Of a stretch of 13,158 nucleotides of DNA, positions 1 through 13,158 are shown one piece after another. A program made the translations under genes and the position numbers. The DNA is from Trichoplax adhaerens (taxonomy: Eukaryota > Animalia > Placozoa): NCBI RefSeq assembly GCF_000150275.1, contig NW_002061069.1, positions 1 through 13,158 of the forward strand. The letters run 5' to 3'. Positions within the stretch are counted from its first letter, which is position 1, and each line of letters starts with the position of its first letter. Below the pieces are notes generated by a model that saw only the letters and a program-made list of their open reading frames with translations, was not told the origin of the DNA and made no database searches.

Positions 1-191
1 CTCAGCTTATGCTAGATGTTGAGTTCACGCAATTAATTATTTCTAAATGGATATTTAAATCAATATATTCCATTTTCAATTCGTAGATTTTAATAATTAA
101 TTTAACCTATAAAACGTTTTATCACCGGTAATATAGCATTGAAGTACCTATATCCTTCTAATTTAAATTGTCCTTCATCTATTAACTATAG

Positions 192-1246
192 ACATTCGAC
201 ACGTGAATACTTATGTTGCGTTGCGCCATCCTCAGTAATTGTATGCAGACCAAATCCGAATCAATTTAGCCTATCTACGTGCTATAATATTTTGGCGCAT
301 GATTTATTGCGTGTATTTATCTGGGTAATTGGTATAATTTCAGTCGTTGGTAACACAGTTTCTATAAGGTGGCATTCTCAAAAAAAATCTTCTAAAAAAC
401 TTGGAATAGTAGAAATGTTATTAATTAACTTATCGGCTGCGGATTTTATCATGGGTATCTACCTAATTATCATAGCATCAGCCAATGTATATTATGCAAA
501 CCGTTATTATGAAATTTTTCAAGAATGGCTACGTAGTGTACCATGTCTAACGGCCTCGTTTTGTATCTCATTATCGAGCTTAATGTCGACATTTGTGCTC
601 TTTCTAATAACTCTTGATCGTTATCTGCACCTAGTTTATCCTTTTCAAAATTATCGCTTATCTACTAAAACTACTATTTTAGCATTGGTAGTTCTTTGGT
701 TAATATCAATCGCATTTGTTGGATTACCAATTCTTTATAGTATTAATCAACCGTCAATTAATCGTCTATATTCTAGCAATAGTGCATGCTTACCTGGTAA
801 TTTTAATAACCCATATTTATTAACATGGCTATTATGTTATGCTGGATTAACCTTAATCGTTTGGATTTTTATTGCAATCATGTATGCCGCAATTCTATCG
901 ACATTAGCAAATTCACGTAAAGAAGCTCATAGACGTTTATCAAAGAATGATAAAATTATTCGCGCTAAATTGATTACTATTGTAGCAACGGATTTAATAT
1001 GTTGGCTACCATTATATATAGTATTAATTCGAGGTTTTGGTTATGGATTAGACACGCATTCACTACCATTTATCGCTGTGTTATCATTGCCACTAAATTC
1101 ATGTATTAATCCGATCATTTATACGCTCTTTACAACTACATTTATCGATTACATTAACTTAGCTATTGGAAAGTTAAATTGCTGTTCATGTTTAGCATTC
1201 TTTCGATCAATTCGTAAGTCAAGTCAAGGTAGTCAACTACAAGGGA
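192..1246 (+). CDS. Large exon of a class A leucine-rich-repeat GPCR (LGR; RXFP/GRL101-like): Cys-rich hinge plus 7TM domain. Gene is 5'-partial; the LRR exons are probably upstream of the window
   Basis: Translation shows the LGR hinge (YLCCVAP...C.P.PNQFSLSTCYNIL), TM1 LRVFIWVIGIISVVGN, TM2 NLSAADFIMGIYL, TM3 ITLDRY, ECL2 YSSNSACLP, TM6 IVATDLICWLP and TM7 LPLNSCINPIIY (NPxxY). Acceptor 'attaactatag' ends at 191 (phase 2, typical of LRR-exon junctions). Donor 'GGGA|gtaagt' at 1247 (phase 1). The ORF-track TTG start at 139 is probably intronic. Confidence 0.93.
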
Positions 1247-1437
1247 GTAAGTTAAGACCTATTTCTAAATTAAAGTGATTAATATACTCTGACACCTTAT
1301 TAAATGAGAGTTCTATAACCGTTAAGTAGTAACATATATCTTAACAACAAGTAAGCAGTACATAACGATTATATTTACGCGTTGTTTCGATGATGTGTAT
1401 GCTTTATTTAAATAACACAAAGGCAATTTCCATCTAG

Positions 1438-1505
1438 ATATTTATACCGGCTCGATTCATCCATCACTTGTCATTGCACTCTCCAGTAACCCTGAACTAT
1501 CTAAG
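1438..1505 (+). CDS. Linker exon after TM7 / C-tail (NIYTGSIHPSLVIALSSNPELSK)
   Basis: Acceptor 'tttccatctag' ends at 1437 and donor 'AAG|gtaat' begins at 1506. The exon is 68 nt, phase 1 in and phase 0 out, open, and in frame with the 1246 donor. Confidence 0.72.
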
Positions 1506-1589
1506 GTAATCCTTTTTATAAGATTTGTTATCTTTATTGAAAATTATCAACTATCTTGGCTTGGCAGGGCTAATTTTAAAATCTTTCAG

Positions 1590-1610
1590 CAATATCCAAC
1601 ACAATCATAA
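1590..1610 (+). CDS. Possible alternative terminal mini-exon (QYPTQS*) giving a receptor without the kinase-like domain
   Basis: A good acceptor 'atctttcag' ends at 1589, giving an 84-nt intron from the 1505 donor. In phase 0 it reads CAA TAT CCA ACA CAA TCA TAA. Confidence 0.3.
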   Translation, partial: QYPTQS

Positions 1611-2091
1611 ACTTCTTATGTCCAATACTCGCTTTAACTATTGCACAACCTAAACTGGATCAATAGCATTTACTTTACGTTACTCCGTATAATGACTATT
1701 GTTAGATCGAAAGTATCGTTATGATATTCTTGCAATGAGCGAAACAAGTGCATAAGGCGATTGCATGGCATAACTAGGTCTTTTTTATGACGTAAATTCT
1801 AGAGTACACTATAATAATATTTAAGGGAGATGCAATTTCACCAGTAAGAAATAGTTTCTTATAAATTAATTAATTAATGAATTATAAATCCAATTAGTCT
1901 AATGTTTACGTGGCTAGCACAATAGCTAAAATCACTAAAATTACGTTATATTTTGCTAAGATTTTTAAACGGTATAGACATATCATTTATTTACTGTGAT
2001 AAATATTATCTATCACCGGTAGTACAGAACAGCATGTAAGCTGTGATTCGCGTAAAGCTCTTACGAATATTTAACTTTGCTTTGATACAAG

Positions 2092-2321
2092 GTTTACATT
2101 AAAGTCGAATTACCTCATAATTATGGAGTGAATAATTTGGGGTGGCTGCAGCTTTATAACGCAAAAGATAACTTACCTTGGGAAAAAGAGATATCATTTT
2201 ATACATACATCAAATCAAAAGACTGTAAATTAAAGAATGTTATGGGTTGTTTGTGGTACTGTAAAGGAAATGAATGTAGAATCGAAATAGATGGTGGCAA
2301 GAAGCTATTTGCGGATAAATT
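2092..2321 (+). CDS. Pseudokinase exon K1 (N-lobe: VYIKVELP...GWLQLY...WEKEISFY...KNVMGCLWYC)
   Basis: Acceptor 'tttgctttgatacaag' ends at 2091 (phase 0), with an in-frame TGA at 2083 just upstream. Donor 'TT|gtaggt' at 2322 (phase 2). EKEISF resembles the alphaC Glu and KNVMGCL resembles the HxNIVxL motif. Confidence 0.7.
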
Positions 2322-2407
2322 GTAGGTCGTGTTTTTTTAGCTTTCACAAGGTATGTACATTCTGTATTTATACAGGTATATTTACAAGATATATCCTTTT
2401 TTCGCAG

Positions 2408-2606
2408 TATAACTTGTTTTACAGCAGACGCCAATGACATTATGCTTCTGAGCAATTCCATCCGTTTGCAATCCGATTACCTGACATCACATCGGATTCT
2501 GCAAATTAGTATGAATATTATACAAGCAATTCAATCTTTGCACCTGAATAATATAGTCCATGGATCAATAAATACCGATGCTGTTATTCTACTTATTTCG
2601 CCGAAG
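2408..2606 (+). CDS. Pseudokinase exon K2 (alphaE and degenerate catalytic loop: ILQISMNIIQAIQSLHLNNIVHGSINTDAVILL)
   Basis: Acceptor 'ttttttcgcag' ends at 2407 (phase 2, matching K1; 86-nt intron). Donor 'AAG|gtacgt' at 2607. LHLNNIVHGSINTDAVIL aligns with the kinase consensus LHxxxIVHRDLKPxNIL. Confidence 0.82.
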
Positions 2607-3084
2607 GTACGTAATAGCATATTTAAAGACAGATATTCTAACGATAATACAACAATTCTGAAATATTTAAGTTCTATTAGTTTATTTTAACCATGCCTAT
2701 AATTTGTGCATGGTTTGCCTACAAAACTAATATCTTCATTGATTTACTTGAGTGTAGTCTATGCCAATGGTATTAATCAATATAAGAATGGGTCATTAAA
2801 TAATTCTTACTATGTTTAATCTACTTATAAAATAAATTTAGAATTAGAAATTTATAGATTCATGAATATCGCTTTCCTCTCAAATACAATGCAGAAATAC
2901 TGTATCGCTACTAAAAATTATTTGTAGTCAATAAATTTCAGAGAACAATTCTGGTCATTCGAATATCATGCTTATTACGAACTAGTCGAATTTCTATTAC
3001 TATTTATATCGGTACTATCTATCCTTTATCGAAAAGTTATGATATAACTGATAACTTATTACTTGTTTAAATTTATATATCTAG

Positions 3085-3333
3085 GAACCGATTACCGCCT
3101 TATTAGGCAAATTTTCAAATACGACGATATTTAAAAACGATCTTCATGAAAAGTACAGAAATCGATACCGTCAATTAATGAAAACAGATATTTCTGACTT
3201 TGCATTATTGTGCAATGAATTAAGTTCATACTGCCAAACGCAAATCGATCAAATTAATGAGAGCCAATTGCAACCAGATAAAGTGATGCAAGCTAGCGAA
3301 GGTATTGAATCTTGGAGATCAGTAAACGAAAAA
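3085..3333 (+). CDS. Pseudokinase exon K3 (ALLGKFS = degenerate DFG; KTDISDFALLCNEL = subdomain IX)
   Basis: Acceptor 'atatctag' ends at 3084 and donor 'AAA|gtaagt' begins at 3334. The exon is 249 nt, phase 0-0 and open. The motifs align with AKLGDFG and KSDVWSFGILLWEL. Confidence 0.82.
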
Positions 3334-3617
3334 GTAAGTATCTACTTTAATAAACTGCATTAACTGTACGTAGTTGACTTCTAGCGACAAGTGCTTAGCG
3401 AAGCAGTAATGATATAACTAAACTTTGAGTAACACAAGCATATTGTAAGGTAGTAAAACAGCAATTACTGTCGTAAACTGTTATATTATACTCGTATGTC
3501 TGTGCATAACTAGCTGTATTGACATATAGTGATTGATGTAAATGCCAATGATATTACGAAACTATAATAGATTCTTTGATGTTCATTAATCTAGTAAAAC
3601 ATTTATCAAATTTTTAG

Positions 3618-3716
3618 TTACGTATTGTCAAAGATGCCATCGATGATCAATTACAGGAAAATAGAGAACCAAAGCAAATTTTAGCTGATCTATGGGCCAT
3701 TACTAGTGGTGACTAA
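3618..3716 (+). CDS. Terminal exon K4 (LRIVKDAIDDQLQENREPKQILADLWAITSGD*), kinase subdomain XI-like
   Basis: Acceptor 'tttttag' ends at 3617 (phase 0). 32 codons are followed by TAA at 3714-3716, with AATAAA about 60 nt downstream. Confidence 0.72.
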   Translation, partial: LRIVKDAIDDQLQENREPKQILADLWAITSGD

Positions 3717-3778
3717 AAGGATTTCATAGCCTACTCATCACTAAGTGTACCGAATAGTGTGAATTAATCATTCCCAAT

Positions 3779-3784
3779 AATAAA
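3779..3784 (+). promoter_or_regulatory. Candidate polyadenylation signal for the LGR-pseudokinase gene
   Basis: AATAAA begins 63 nt after the K4 stop. The motif is common in AT-rich DNA, so support is positional only. Confidence 0.4.
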
Positions 3785-4891
3785 TCCCTGATGACATAAT
3801 AGCCTGAAAATTAAAATAGAAAATCGAACTCAGTAAGAATGATGAAAGTAACTTGTAACTCGAGTTTGTGCTTTTTTTAAATATAGCTTTAATAATGAGA
3901 GTAGCTCATTAAATCTATATTATTATGGATATTTGACCAATGTCTGAATACACTGGTAGATTTCTGTTTCCGTAAACGGTTGTATTTATCATAGTAATTT
4001 TACTATAATAATTTTAGAAAGTAAGTACTGTCCTTTACCTTTCGGCTAGTACTGTTCAGTCAGCGTAGGATAAGGTTAGCGATGAATGACCTAGAGAACT
4101 CTGGTAACTTCCCGGATAAGTTCGTAATTTCCAAAAAACATAGAAATGACTGTATTGCTTGCGAGTAATTTTTTGCTGCCTTAATTAATTTCAAGAGTCT
4201 ATGATAGGAACATTTAATTACATTTATCGTCTGGTACCTGATAAATACATATCCCAGTAATAATATAAAGTTAGCATTAACATACGTGTAAAGGCACTGA
4301 AACCAATTTAAATCGTGATTCTCTTGCTAATAAACTTCGTTCTTTCAATCTTGAAGCTCTCATATAAAAATTTTACGTGTGTAATGTTCTCGTCTCCTTC
4401 TTAAACCTAGTCTACCGGTAAAATTTAAACTAGTGCACATCAATAAAATCTTTATATGCTTCTGTTGTGCTTTTAGTGACTTTGATGCCACCTATCGAGG
4501 CATCTTGTATTCTCACTTAAGGCTACAACTATCGTTTCTAAAACTGTCCATTGACAGTACTCGACTATTCTAACGTCTAAATGTAATATCCTTGATACCG
4601 CTAGTCCACTCAGATCTTTACTGCAAATTTTATGCTTTGGTGAATATGCTATTGCTGCAAACCGAAAGTTGTGCACAGGCAAAATATAACTATTATAGAA
4701 CTCTACAACTACGAACCTTCTGTCGGGGTTATCCTCCCTGACACTATAACTTTAAATTCGGGCGATCTGCTATCGATAGGAGGAACAACAGCGCCACTAG
4801 TCTCTCGTTAGACAAAGCTGAGGCCAAGCATTATTGAAAAAGTCAGCCAATTTATAGTAAATCTACATAAATATTAATTGTCAGTTTGTAG

Positions 4892-9010: not shown

Positions 9011-10819
9011 TGTATATATTGAGCTACATTTCTTGGAATATTAATTAGTAGATTTTGTATTAGAATTGCGTTTACGGTTATCCAAATTTATTTTAAAACT
9101 TTCTCTGAAAAATGAAACTGTTAATATAGTACAATTTGTCAATGTTTTCAACACGATGTCTTTCGTTAGTTTGAAATTTATTATTTTTCTTATAGTTTAT
9201 TTACGACAGTAACTTTAGGATTCAATTTCCACATCAGCTTAAATCATATTTCGTAATATTATTTTACAAATTATAGATGCAAAGCTTGTGAAAGTCAATA
9301 AAGCAATTTGGTAAAGCCTAACAAACAATGAGATATTGTTCTATAGTCTCCCAATCTTGAACTTGATTTCTTTGACCTTATACACTACTACAATTACTCC
9401 TTTCGTATAGAACTGTCTGCAAATACAAAGAACATAAGAGCAACATGAATATAACTGTATTCATTAAGATCCATTAGCTATAGTTACAATAAAATTTACT
9501 ATGCTAGATAACTGATCTGTATGAGACTAATTCAATAATGACATTATAATGTATTTTCAAATATTTCAATGATTGAATACTATAATAGAAATTGTCGAAA
9601 TCTGATGTATTAGTAAAATATAATTGTGATGACAGAATAAATTTCGTATTTAACGTCCACTGCAACCATTTGTAAACTCATGATTGAGATAGAATTAGCA
9701 CCTAAAAATGAGGCAAATAATTAATCTTGTTACTTTTCATAATGCGATAATTTCTAATATACTGTTAAAAGCTGTGATTTTGGAGCTACACTAGACAGTA
9801 TTAGTAAATTTTATTGTTATTATCTGTACTAGTGCCGTAATTAAAAAAGTAATGGGGGTTTAATGAATATCTTTCAAAACAAAAGTAAATTTGGTCTAGA
9901 CATTCGTATGGAGTATATCCGCTAATCAGGGATATAATACTCGCTCTGAGATATCGAACTTGATTGTTTATGGCTTGTTTTAGTCATGGAAACGATTCGT
10001 TGTTACTGCAAGCTGTTTATATATTCCTGTTCTGATACTCAAGATGAATGATAAACTCCATCATTAAATGGTAATAATCCGTTAAATAATTTAAAAGTTT
10101 TAATTTCATAAGCTTAAAGATGATTTTGCTTAATCTAGTGAAAAAGTGGCTAATATGATACAAGAGCTTACTGATCCGATTAAATCTATACACAATGATA
10201 ATCTTTTCATTATATTAAATATCATAATTTTAGTCTGGCAGAAAACTGGTTTAATAATTGATTATGATATAATGCAAGATGTAAGATATTTCTTCTGTCT
10301 AGATGTCGTAAGATTTACAATGACTGGAAGTCGAAAACAAATAAACAAAAGCATTATAATTAAGAACATTGAATTGTCTAAATTTTAGCTATTAAAAATG
10401 TTCTATTAATTTGAGGTTGTCATAATTTACGCTAGAGGGTATAAATATACAGCTACGCCGTTAAAATTTTCTCACTCAGTTTTCTTTAAGTGACTCGATC
10501 TTTCTGATCATCAGAATGGTAAAAATTATTCTGGAATACATACTCTTGTATTTGATTCTATGTTGCACATTAAATAGGCTTGCAGGTGGGATGATAACAT
10601 ATACGAATATATCCTTATGATTAATTACGTCTTTAACATCATATTTGTGTCCTTATAATTGTTAATAATTTTTACATGATATCATCTAGAAAACACCAAA
10701 GACTACTGATATTTTTGTTATAATTTCATATCACGTAACTTGATATACTATAAATATCAAGTCAATGTAGAATATATGTATAGTGTATAGATATACCAAG
10801 CTGTAATATCTTTTGGTAG

Positions 10820-10924
10820 TTTTGGAAGGCCTTCAATGTGGTAGCTCATCGCAACAAATTCCATCCAGTAAATTCTGCGACTGTAAGACCGATTGCCACA
10901 ATGGACAAGATGAAAGAGATTGTA
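10820..10924 (+). CDS. LDL-receptor class A (LDLa) module exon (LEGLQCGSSSQQIPSSKFCDCKTDCHNGQDERDC), probably the N-terminal part of the next LGR gene
   Basis: Acceptor 'tcttttggtag' ends at 10819 and donor 'TGTA|gtaagt' begins at 10925. It is a 105-nt symmetric phase 1-1 exon with the hallmark C-D-x3-D-C-x-(D/N)-G-x-D-E-x2-C motif. It is too short for the ORF track. Confidence 0.85.
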
Positions 10925-11733: not shown

Positions 11734-11783
11734 NNNNNNNNNNNNNNNNNNNNNNNNNNNNNNNNNNNNNNNNNNNNNNNNNN
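11734..11783. other. Assembly gap (50 N; true size unknown)
   Basis: Run of n characters. Confidence 0.99.
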
Positions 11784-11904
11784 ATACATACATCAAATCA
11801 AAAGACTGTAAATTAAAGAATATTATGGGTTGTTTGTGGTACTGTAAAGGAAATGAATGTAGAATCGAAATAGATGGTGGCAAGAAGCTATTTCCGGATA
11901 AATT
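11784..11904 (+). CDS. Copy 2 pseudokinase exon K1 (5' part hidden in the gap)
   Basis: Homologous to 2201-2321 with V->I and A->P changes. Donor gtaggt at 11905 is retained. Confidence 0.7.
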
Positions 11905-11991
11905 GTAGGTCGTGTTTTTTTTAGCTTTCATAAGGTATGTACATTCTGTATTTATACAGGTGTATTTACAAGATATATCCTTTTTTCGTAG

Positions 11992-12190
11992 TATAACTTG
12001 TTTTACAGCAGACGCCAATGACATTATGCTTCTGAGCAATTCCATCCGTTTGCAATCCGATTACCTGACATCACATCGGATTCTGCAAATTAGCATGAAT
12101 ATTATACAAGCAATTCAATCTTTACACCTGAATAATATAGTCCATGGATCAATAAATACCGATGCTGTTATTCTACTTATTTCGCCGAAG
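11992..12190 (+). CDS. Copy 2 pseudokinase exon K2
   Basis: Homologous to 2408-2606 with two synonymous changes only. The acceptor changed cag->tag and is still canonical. Donor gtacgt at 12191. Confidence 0.8.
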
Positions 12191-12670
12191 GTACGTAAAA
12201 GCACATTTAAAGGCCGATATTCAAACGATAATACAACAATTCTGAAATATTTAAGTTCTATTAGTTTATTTTGACCATGCCTATAATTTGTGCATGGTTT
12301 GCCTACAAAACTAATATCTTCATTAATTTACTTGAATGTAGTCTATGCCAGTGGTATTAATCAATATAAGAATGGGTCATTAAATAATTCTTACTATGTT
12401 TAATCTACTTATAAAATAAATTTAGAATTAGAAATTTATAGATTCACGAATATCAATTTCCTCTCAAAATACAATGTAGAAATACTGTATCGCTACTAAA
12501 AATTATTAGTAGTCAATAAATTTCACAGATACAATTCTGGTCATTCGAATATCATGCTTATTACGAATTAGTCGAATTTCTATTACTATTTATATCGGTA
12601 CTATCTATCCTTTATCGAAAAGTCATGATATAACTGATAAATTATTACTTGTTTAAATTTATATATCTAG

Positions 12671-12919
12671 GAACCGATTACCGCCTTATTAGGCAAATTT
12701 TCAAATACGACGATATTTAAAAACGATCTTCATGAAAAGTACAGAAATCGATACCGTCAATTAATAAAAACAGATATTTCTGACTTTGCATTATTGTGCA
12801 ATGAATTAAGTTCATACTGCCAAACGCAAATCGATCAAATTAATGAGAGCCAATTGCAACCAGATAAAGTGATGCAAGCTAGCGAAGGTATTGAATCTTG
12901 GAGATCAGTAAACGAAAAA
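12671..12919 (+). CDS. Copy 2 pseudokinase exon K3
   Basis: Homologous to 3085-3333 with a single ATG->ATA (M->I) change. Splice sites are intact. Confidence 0.8.
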
Positions 12920-13158
12920 GTAAGTATCTACTTTAATAAACTGCATTAACTGTACGTAGTTGACTTCTAGCGACAAGTGCTTAGCGAAGCAGTAATGATA
13001 TAACTAAACTTTGAGTAACACAAGCATATTGTAAGGTAGTAAAACAGCAATTACTGTCGTAAACTGTTATATTATACTCGTATGTCTGTGCATAACTAGC
13101 TGTATTGACATATAGTGATTGATGTAAATGCCAATGATATTACGAAACTATAATAGAT

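Follow-up and report, generated by a model that had tools for sequence, protein, structure and literature searches.

A putative LGR-type receptor with a built-in pseudokinase domain in the placozoan Trichoplax adhaerens

The window analysed here is an entire 13,158-nt contig of Trichoplax adhaerens (NW_002061069.1, contig C1288), which starts inside a gene, at the seven-transmembrane (7TM) exon of a receptor resembling the LGR and GRL101 proteins. Downstream on the same strand stand exons that appear to encode a protein-kinase fold, and the question that this locus raises is whether receptor and kinase-like exons belong to one gene. We propose that they do. With a probability of about 85%, the window holds the 3' two-thirds of an LGR/GRL101-like gene whose tail runs through a 22-amino-acid linker into a pseudokinase of ~260 amino acids, similar to the tyrosine-kinase-like (TKL) group, in one transcript and one reading frame, and this gene is a member of a family of ~15 kinase-bearing placozoan LGR loci derived from a single fusion. 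An in-frame fusion of this kind had been predicted from the letters of the contig; it is now supported by the open exon chain, by joints in RNA contigs and by fused models of paralogs.

Gene structure and RNA evidence

Each of the six exons (Table 1) is preceded by AG and followed by GT. Joined together they total 1900 nt, and the frame that opens at 193 runs for 633 codons to a TAA at 3714-3716, the only stop within it. A recount of the sequence returned the GT-AG chain, the phases (1,0,2,0,0) and the open frame exactly as the original prediction gave them. The smaller points of that prediction hold as well: the kinase-like part measures 258 amino acids, intron 2 has the predicted length, and the frame of exon 3 is closed 9 nt upstream by a TGA (2083-2085), with no ATG between this stop and the exon.

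To judge from its 7TM sequence, its hinge and a leucine-rich-repeat (LRR) ectodomain, the receptor is of the LGR type, as had been claimed. Exon 1 (193-1245) matches Pfam 7tm_1 with an E-value of 1.6e-26 and 93.8 bits against a cut-off of 30.5, which marks a rhodopsin-class 7TM. Its DRY (616-624) and NPIIY (1108-1122) motifs are both intact, a Cys-Cys pair (1180-1185) follows helix 8, and the hinge cysteines can be read directly in the exon. The 7TM open reading frame shares 96% identity with TRIADDRAFT_61227 of T. adhaerens and 99% with the Trichoplax sp. H2 protein P0002, which is named 'GRL101-like, partial' and carries LRR_8; the best named protein matches are GRL101-like and 'Relaxin receptor 2'. 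The LRR part itself lies outside the window, and four exons of one 24-amino-acid LRR each are found upstream of a 98% identical sister copy on contig C1394.

RNA evidence was sought by mapping four public sequencing runs to positions 1-4300 of the window, with contigs accepted at 95% identity or more. Run X8 behaves as complementary DNA: its depth lies on the exons and is zero over 1585-2016, 2737-3024 and 3457-3600 (introns 2, 4 and 5), and in the bin 1297-1440, which is almost all intron 1, it is 1.06 versus ~15 in the flanking bins. All five joints occur in contigs of this run, each at its predicted GT..AG border (1246->1438, 1505->2092, 2321->2408, 2606->3085 and 3333->3618). The critical one is 1505->2092, the junction for which RNA support had been called for; it is present in spliced contigs at a depth of 24, mapped as 1502->2089 with the cut moved by +3 and with 65 letters on its shorter side. 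A joint at 1235->1438 with 11 replaced letters is the 1246->1438 joint in a paralogous copy. No 5' ends of X8 contigs occur near 2092. In the other direction, an 815-nt X8 contig on 192-637 departs from the window precisely at the acceptor at 192. Upstream of that point it codes for LRRs, and its loose end encodes ...FGGVAGIRSI, the end of the LRR region in TRIADDRAFT_61227 (P0001). Run X12, an RNA-Seq library on record, has the joints 2606->3085 and 3333->3618, and one of its contigs (561 nt) covers exons 4, 5 and 6. Runs X1 and X4 cover the introns without joints and look like DNA.

The position of the contig in the genome is a separate matter. A search of the 105.6-Mb assembly to which it belongs found the window to be ~98% identical, introns included, to C1394:306970-313000, part of a 981-kb contig, and for this reason we consider it probable that the window is a haplotig of that locus or a duplicate of very recent origin. 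The narrower proposal, that C1288 is an alternative haplotype or assembly duplicate and not a separate locus, concerns the window and not the identity of the gene, and we consider its chances to be even. Positions 1-4891 align with C1394:306970-312300 (L022) at ~98% identity, introns and flanks included, the kinase-like exons of the two copies differ by 2 synonymous and 0 non-synonymous changes, and the contig is merely 13 kb long and begins within a gene. However, copies at 94-96% identity stand in tandem at this locus, so that the contig could also be one more copy of very young age, and from 4.9 to 11.7 kb the window aligns with the C1394 stretch compared just in patches.

Fold and catalytic residues of the kinase-like domain

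An exon-4 profile and structural models of paralogs indicate that the C-terminal part has a bilobal kinase fold. Among single exons of the window, only exon 4 matches a kinase profile (Pfam PK_Tyr_Ser-Thr, E 0.042, 13.6 bits, below threshold), while the longer public paralog proteins give colinear Pfam kinase matches with E-values of 1.4e-4 to 3.3e-4, all below the 23.1-bit cut-off. Searched against the PDB, an exon-4 profile built on 14 paralogs (A1) matched kinases over alphaE and the catalytic loop, led by CDKL3 (2.5e-5) and STK4 (1.8e-4) and followed by RAF1, KSR1, PAK1 and VRK3. The same profile found 349 matches at E<1e-3 among 1.84 billion representative proteins; Trichoplax family members head this list, and of the matches from outside the family the five that were checked are true kinases. 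TAL-effector proteins, which topped the PDB search (E 1e-20), were rejected as an artefact: their scores add up a faint likeness to an 'LTPE..V.IA'-like word over 15-18 repeats, none of which passes by itself, a pitfall for profile searches that use short queries. A protein search with the kinase-like region of P0035 returned P0035 alone, a result without bearing on absence because the word filter of that search is too strict at such divergence.

AlphaFold2 models were made from family-only alignments for two paralogs, P0035 and P0046 (TRIADDRAFT_61685), which are 28% identical to each other. The predicted local distance difference test (pLDDT) is 80-92 over residues 143-345 of P0035 and averages 78.7 in P0046, where the predicted template modelling score is 0.76; across both models the core lies at 80-96. 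The P0035 model found at least 500 Foldseek matches in the PDB at E<=0.001, and among the matches listed 50 of 50 are kinases; VIA-align gave it Z scores of 13.4 to ALK1 and 13.3 to IRAK4 and SYK, over ~195 residues at a root-mean-square deviation (rmsd) of 3.8. A scan of 48,161 PDB representatives, independent of Foldseek, was run with P0046 and gave Z 14.9 to ActRII and 14.8 to RIPK and IRAK1, then TbetaRI, and its best 50 matches are all kinase folds, including the pseudokinases NFR5, IRAK3 and STRADalpha. Superpositions of the two models on PDB structures align 183-205 residues at rmsd 3.4-4.2. The kinase fold first claimed from sequence is thus backed by PDB kinases found with the exon-4 profile and by two paralog models with Z of 13-15 to TKL kinases, and from the ALK1, IRAK and ActRII matches of these models we take TKL-group kinases to be the nearest structures. 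The first N-lobe strand of the P0046 model (21-30) is made up of linker-exon residues, which suggests that the 22-amino-acid linker is probably part of the domain, namely the first beta strand of its N-lobe.

By sequence this domain is a pseudokinase, as predicted, because the residues needed for catalysis are replaced in the window copy. HRD has become HGS (H-G-x in most paralogs, with Gly for the HRD Arg in 13 of the 14 A1 sequences), the catalytic-loop Asn is Ala (TDA; Asn is kept in L029 and L038), DFG is KFS, with Lys for Asp and Ser for Gly (G[KND]F[ST] in paralogs), and the beta3 Lys is Gln (WLQLY). The copy has no Gly-rich loop motif (GxGxxG), and its activation segment is ~10-15 residues short and without APE.

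Certain pseudokinases bind ATP or catalyse atypically, and the domain could instead be an atypical but active kinase or a nucleotide-binding switch. Most paralogs keep the beta3 Lys and the alphaC Glu, the family consensus reading WLK before alphaC and WEKE within it, and a few (two paralogs) have Asp at the DFG position, so that nucleotide binding is conceivable for the family. We nevertheless regard an active or nucleotide-binding domain as unlikely, since every one of the replacements listed above, with Ser in place of the HRD Asp among them, has to be set against it, together with the missing Gly-rich loop and APE, the short activation segment and the loss of the HRD Arg across the family. 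An orphan exon 4 at C1404:~1078788 (L038:6723-6968), with no LGR 7TM within 6.7 kb upstream, keeps HGD...N, which also speaks for activity and is nearer to an active catalytic loop than that of any receptor-linked copy. A 189-bp satellite (L038:2034-4250), repeated ~12 times in tandem, precedes this exon, which may be what remains of the donor gene or of a free-standing relative.

The paralog family and the weighing of alternatives

Searches of the genome with the window show recent duplicates of the exon block at four places on C1394 and on C1357. A further ten 7TM paralogs, more distant at 54-62% amino acid identity, lie on C1394, C1390, C1397, C1396, C1414 and C1400, and all ten have homologs of exon 3, exon 4 and mostly exon 5 (24-48% identity) on the same strand 0.7-4 kb downstream. 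None of the ~95 weaker 7TM matches (at most 41% identity) has kinase-like exons downstream. It had been asked whether kinase-like paralogs always follow an LGR 7TM exon, and every one that adjoins a 7TM does so, on the same strand. The gene models of three distant paralogs share the layout of a 7TM exon, a linker exon of 23-24 amino acids and then exon 3. In 14 of 14 paralogs a stop 0-19 codons upstream closes the frame of exon 3, and that frame holds no Met, so this exon is unable to start a protein.

Public databases already hold fused members of the family. RDD45091.1 (P0194, 1129 amino acids) of Trichoplax sp. H2 combines LRR_8 (8e-38), 7tm_1 (1e-25) and a sub-threshold PK_Tyr_Ser-Thr match (3.3e-4); the other two, P0195 and P0052, are RDD39592.1 ('Relaxin receptor 2', H2, 896 amino acids) and XP_002116412.1 (TRIADDRAFT_60495, 697 amino acids). 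In UniRef, two fragments that hold the kinase part alone bear the name 'Protein kinase domain-containing protein'. The family is split in the gene models of 2008: TRIADDRAFT_61227 is a 7TM-only model that ends at the intron-1 read-through stop, and TRIADDRAFT_61685 and TRIADDRAFT_62588 (P0193) are separate kinase-like fragments. A metagenome contig of 3662 nt and 29% GC (L041; ERZ23499115, scaffold_6618) starts at exon 3 and carries homologs of exons 3-5 in the same exon order and structure; they are just 35-50% identical to any T. adhaerens copy, and for this reason the family seems to be present in another placozoan-like organism. At C1385:~243000 (L037:5053-6199), kinase-like exons 3 and 4 follow a coatomer-delta-like gene and have no 7TM exon in their vicinity, and an exon-5-like piece lies ~20 kb away (L039:6481-6723); this may be a stand-alone gene, a fragment or a pseudogene.

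The kinase-like exons are under purifying selection, with a ratio of non-synonymous to synonymous change (dN/dS) of 0.24-0.41 in six diverged pairs of recent copies. This bears on the proposal that the domain is a decaying relic without a role, carried along by recent tandem duplication. Extreme sequence divergence is in keeping with decay, as is the faster evolution of the domain relative to the 7TM (24-48% versus 54-62% identity), and several copies are broken: in-frame stops occur in the 7TM and kinase-like exons of C1394:267794-270632 (L025) and in the 7TM exons of C1357:35304-38783 (L026), C1414:99599 and C1390:641449. These copies look like pseudogenes or misassemblies, and they suggest a family undergoing birth and death. 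Constraint among the recent copies is hard to reconcile with a relic, however, as is the persistence of open frames and of the core motifs CY, LTPE, IVHG, LLGxF[ST] and YC across deeply diverged paralogs; the structural models are confident in their core, and the exons are expressed and spliced. A relic is therefore improbable, slightly more so than an active enzyme.

The proposal that fares worst, which we hold to be very improbable, is that of two adjacent genes, an LGR that has only the 7TM and ends at 1278 and, next to it, an independent kinase-like gene, with the spliced contigs arising from occasional read-through or chimeric transcripts; it can point to the JGI model TRIADDRAFT_61227 with its terminus at the read-through stop, to the kinase-like-only models TRIADDRAFT_61685, TRIADDRAFT_62588 and TrispH2_008134 and to two loci whose kinase-like exons have no 7TM nearby, but it founders on an exon 3 closed upstream and without a start codon in all 14 paralogs, on the X8 data (zero depth over 1585-2016, no 5' ends near 2092 and a linker exon spliced on both sides), on strand, order and linker that are conserved among paralogs whose kinase-like exons are only 24-48% identical, and on the full fused models in Trichoplax sp. 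H2.

Besides the lysine, glutamate and aspartate retained in paralogs, several observations weigh against a single fused receptor-pseudokinase gene. Among the RNA contigs no single molecule spans LRR, 7TM and pseudokinase, or exon 1 to exon 6. The contig that joins exon 1 to exon 2 contains an 11-mer specific to the paralog at C1394:~351,070, and, given acceptance at 95% identity or more, the contigs may derive from any of four copies that are 94-99% identical. No member of the family reaches the gathering score of a Pfam kinase model, the best being 21.7 (P0193), 20.9 (P0052) and 20.5 bits (P0194) against 23.1, and a phmmer search of the PDB with the single sequence P0046 gave no kinase match, single sequences of this family being so divergent that the fold shows only in profiles and structures. 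Finally, the structural models are of paralogs that are 27-41% identical to the domain in the window and not of the window's own protein, and AlphaFold may lean towards a well-known fold.

Further along the window, an LDL-receptor class A (LDLa) exon probably marks the start of the next tandem receptor gene. Together with the assembly gap and a second kinase-like copy, which is 97-99% identical to window positions 2201-3560 (repeat search, families D1-D4), it looks like such a gene, the gap concealing its LRR and 7TM exons.

Table 1. Features of the window (positions in the 13,158-nt contig)
Feature	Position	Strand	Description
Exon 1	192-1246	+	Cys-rich hinge, seven transmembrane helices, helix 8, proximal tail; codons 193-1245, base 1246 opens a split codon
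Intron 1	1247-1437	+	GT..AG; if retained, stop at 1276-1278, as in the 7TM-only JGI model
Exon 2 (linker)	1438-1505	+	68 nt, 22 codons plus split codon; both borders used in RNA contigs
Intron 2	1506-2091	+	586 nt, GT..AG; junction that creates the fusion
Exon 3 (kinase-like)	2092-2321	+	N-lobe strands, beta3 position WLQLY 2143-2157, alphaC helix WEKE 2179-2190; secondary structure from paralog models
Exon 4 (kinase-like)	2408-2606	+	alphaD/alphaE, degenerate catalytic loop IVHGSINTD 2553-2579
Exon 5 (kinase-like)	3085-3333	+	DFG-equivalent LLGKFS 3100-3117, shortened activation segment, alphaF-like helix DISDFALLCNEL 3187-3222; from paralog translations
Exon 6 (last coding)	3618-3716	+	C-terminal helix, TAA 3714-3716; conserved in recent copies
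3' untranslated region (minimum extent)	3717-4268	+	X8 contigs on 3794-3965 and 4084-4268; AATAAA at 3779 and 4329
LDLa exon	10807-10923	+	Pfam Ldl_recept_a E 5.2e-5, 23.8 bits, just below the 24.1 cut-off
Assembly gap	11735-11783		~0.8 kb after the LDLa exon; kinase-like copy directly 3'
Second kinase-like copy	11784-13158	+	Exon 3 partial (to 11904), exon 4 11992-12190, exon 5 12671-12919, with introns

Proposed role and comparison with known systems

How might such a receptor work? We tentatively suggest a non-catalytic mechanism, for which we would put the chances a little short of even. Ligand binding to the LRR ectodomain would rearrange transmembrane helices 6 and 7 and helix 8, and this change would be passed to the pseudokinase tethered ~45 residues after helix 8. 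The pseudokinase, without catalysis of its own, could then provide a docking site or an allosteric element through which a partner, for example an active TKL kinase or an adaptor, is recruited or activated, in a manner proposed to resemble IRAK3, STRADalpha, KSR and the kinase-homology domain of receptor guanylyl cyclases. The scaffold or allosteric switch envisaged in the original prediction would be a role of this kind. A built-in regulator of G-protein or arrestin coupling would be the next most likely role, although a doubtful one.

We think it rather likely that placozoans independently evolved a family of LGR-type, rhodopsin-class G-protein-coupled receptors (GPCRs) with a built-in pseudokinase of TKL descent, which would couple ligand sensing by the LRR ectodomain and a G-protein-competent 7TM core directly to kinase-scaffold signalling. 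If so, the class escaped notice because its kinase domain does not reach the Pfam thresholds and because its genes were split or truncated in the first annotation. In this family a kinase fold is attached to a genuine class of animal hormone receptors, the LGRs, and the host is among the animals that branched off earliest. The family is expanded, expressed and constrained, and it offers a natural test case for the wiring of 7TM activation to kinase-type scaffolds with no G protein in between. For annotation more generally, surveys based on InterPro miss architectures whose pseudokinases score below threshold, and most of the T. adhaerens v1 models of this family are truncated or split. What is new is the placozoan LGR-pseudokinase family, for which our literature searches found no published description; the fusion of a GPCR with a kinase is already known as a general kind. 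The original prediction, which knew of no characterised animal LGR with a kinase-fold tail, needs amending in that fused paralog models are already in GenBank, where they are not annotated as kinase-bearing.

GPCR-enzyme fusions had been described in the original prediction as mainly oomycete and amoebozoan. They are indeed known there, as GPCR-PIPK such as Dictyostelium RpkA and as GPCR-TKL (PMC6033456, PMC5784254, PMC10463195). GPCR-kinase fusions, formerly thought confined to protists, were extended in 2025 to choanoflagellates and sponges, with GPCR-TKL/K in acanthoecid choanoflagellates and GPCR with a tyrosine kinase (GPCR-TK) in choanoflagellates and sponges (PMC12716839, eLife), so that the general kind is known in holozoans and the earlier restriction falls. 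The 2025 fusions are reported as 'not in other metazoan lineages', none of them is characterised, and their 7TMs cluster with no other GPCRs (PMC12716839).

The Trichoplax family shares with these holozoan fusions an N-terminal 7TM, a C-terminal kinase-fold domain and a kinase part of TKL or TK likeness. In the choanoflagellate and sponge proteins, however, the 7TM groups neither with rhodopsin nor with LGR receptors, an LRR ectodomain is missing, and the kinase domains are recognised by Pfam and InterPro, whereas the Trichoplax proteins have an LGR-type rhodopsin 7TM, a placozoan host and a degenerate kinase domain below threshold. Because of these differences in receptor, host and kinase domain, the Trichoplax fusion is most likely independent of the choanoflagellate and sponge fusions. 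The oomycete and amoebozoan GPCR-bigrams are similar in having an enzyme-fold domain on the C-terminal tail of a 7TM receptor, but they differ in their protist hosts, in their other 7TM classes, in their lipid kinases or apparently active protein kinases and in having no LRR ectodomain.

Among pseudokinase modules, IRAK3, STRADalpha and NFR5 (structural matches) and KSR1 (a profile match) likewise have a kinase fold without catalytic residues. None of the signalling pseudokinases considered here (IRAK3, STRADalpha, NFR5, KSR and the receptor guanylyl cyclase domain) sits on a 7TM receptor, and the likeness to them would be one of mechanism. With the LGR, RXFP and GRL101 receptors of animals the Trichoplax proteins share an LRR ectodomain encoded at one LRR per exon, a Cys-rich hinge, a single large 7TM exon and the DRY and NPxxY motifs; as for LDLa, the only such exon in the window apparently belongs to the next gene. 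Known LGRs end in a short cytoplasmic tail, whereas the Trichoplax family adds ~280 residues of kinase fold.

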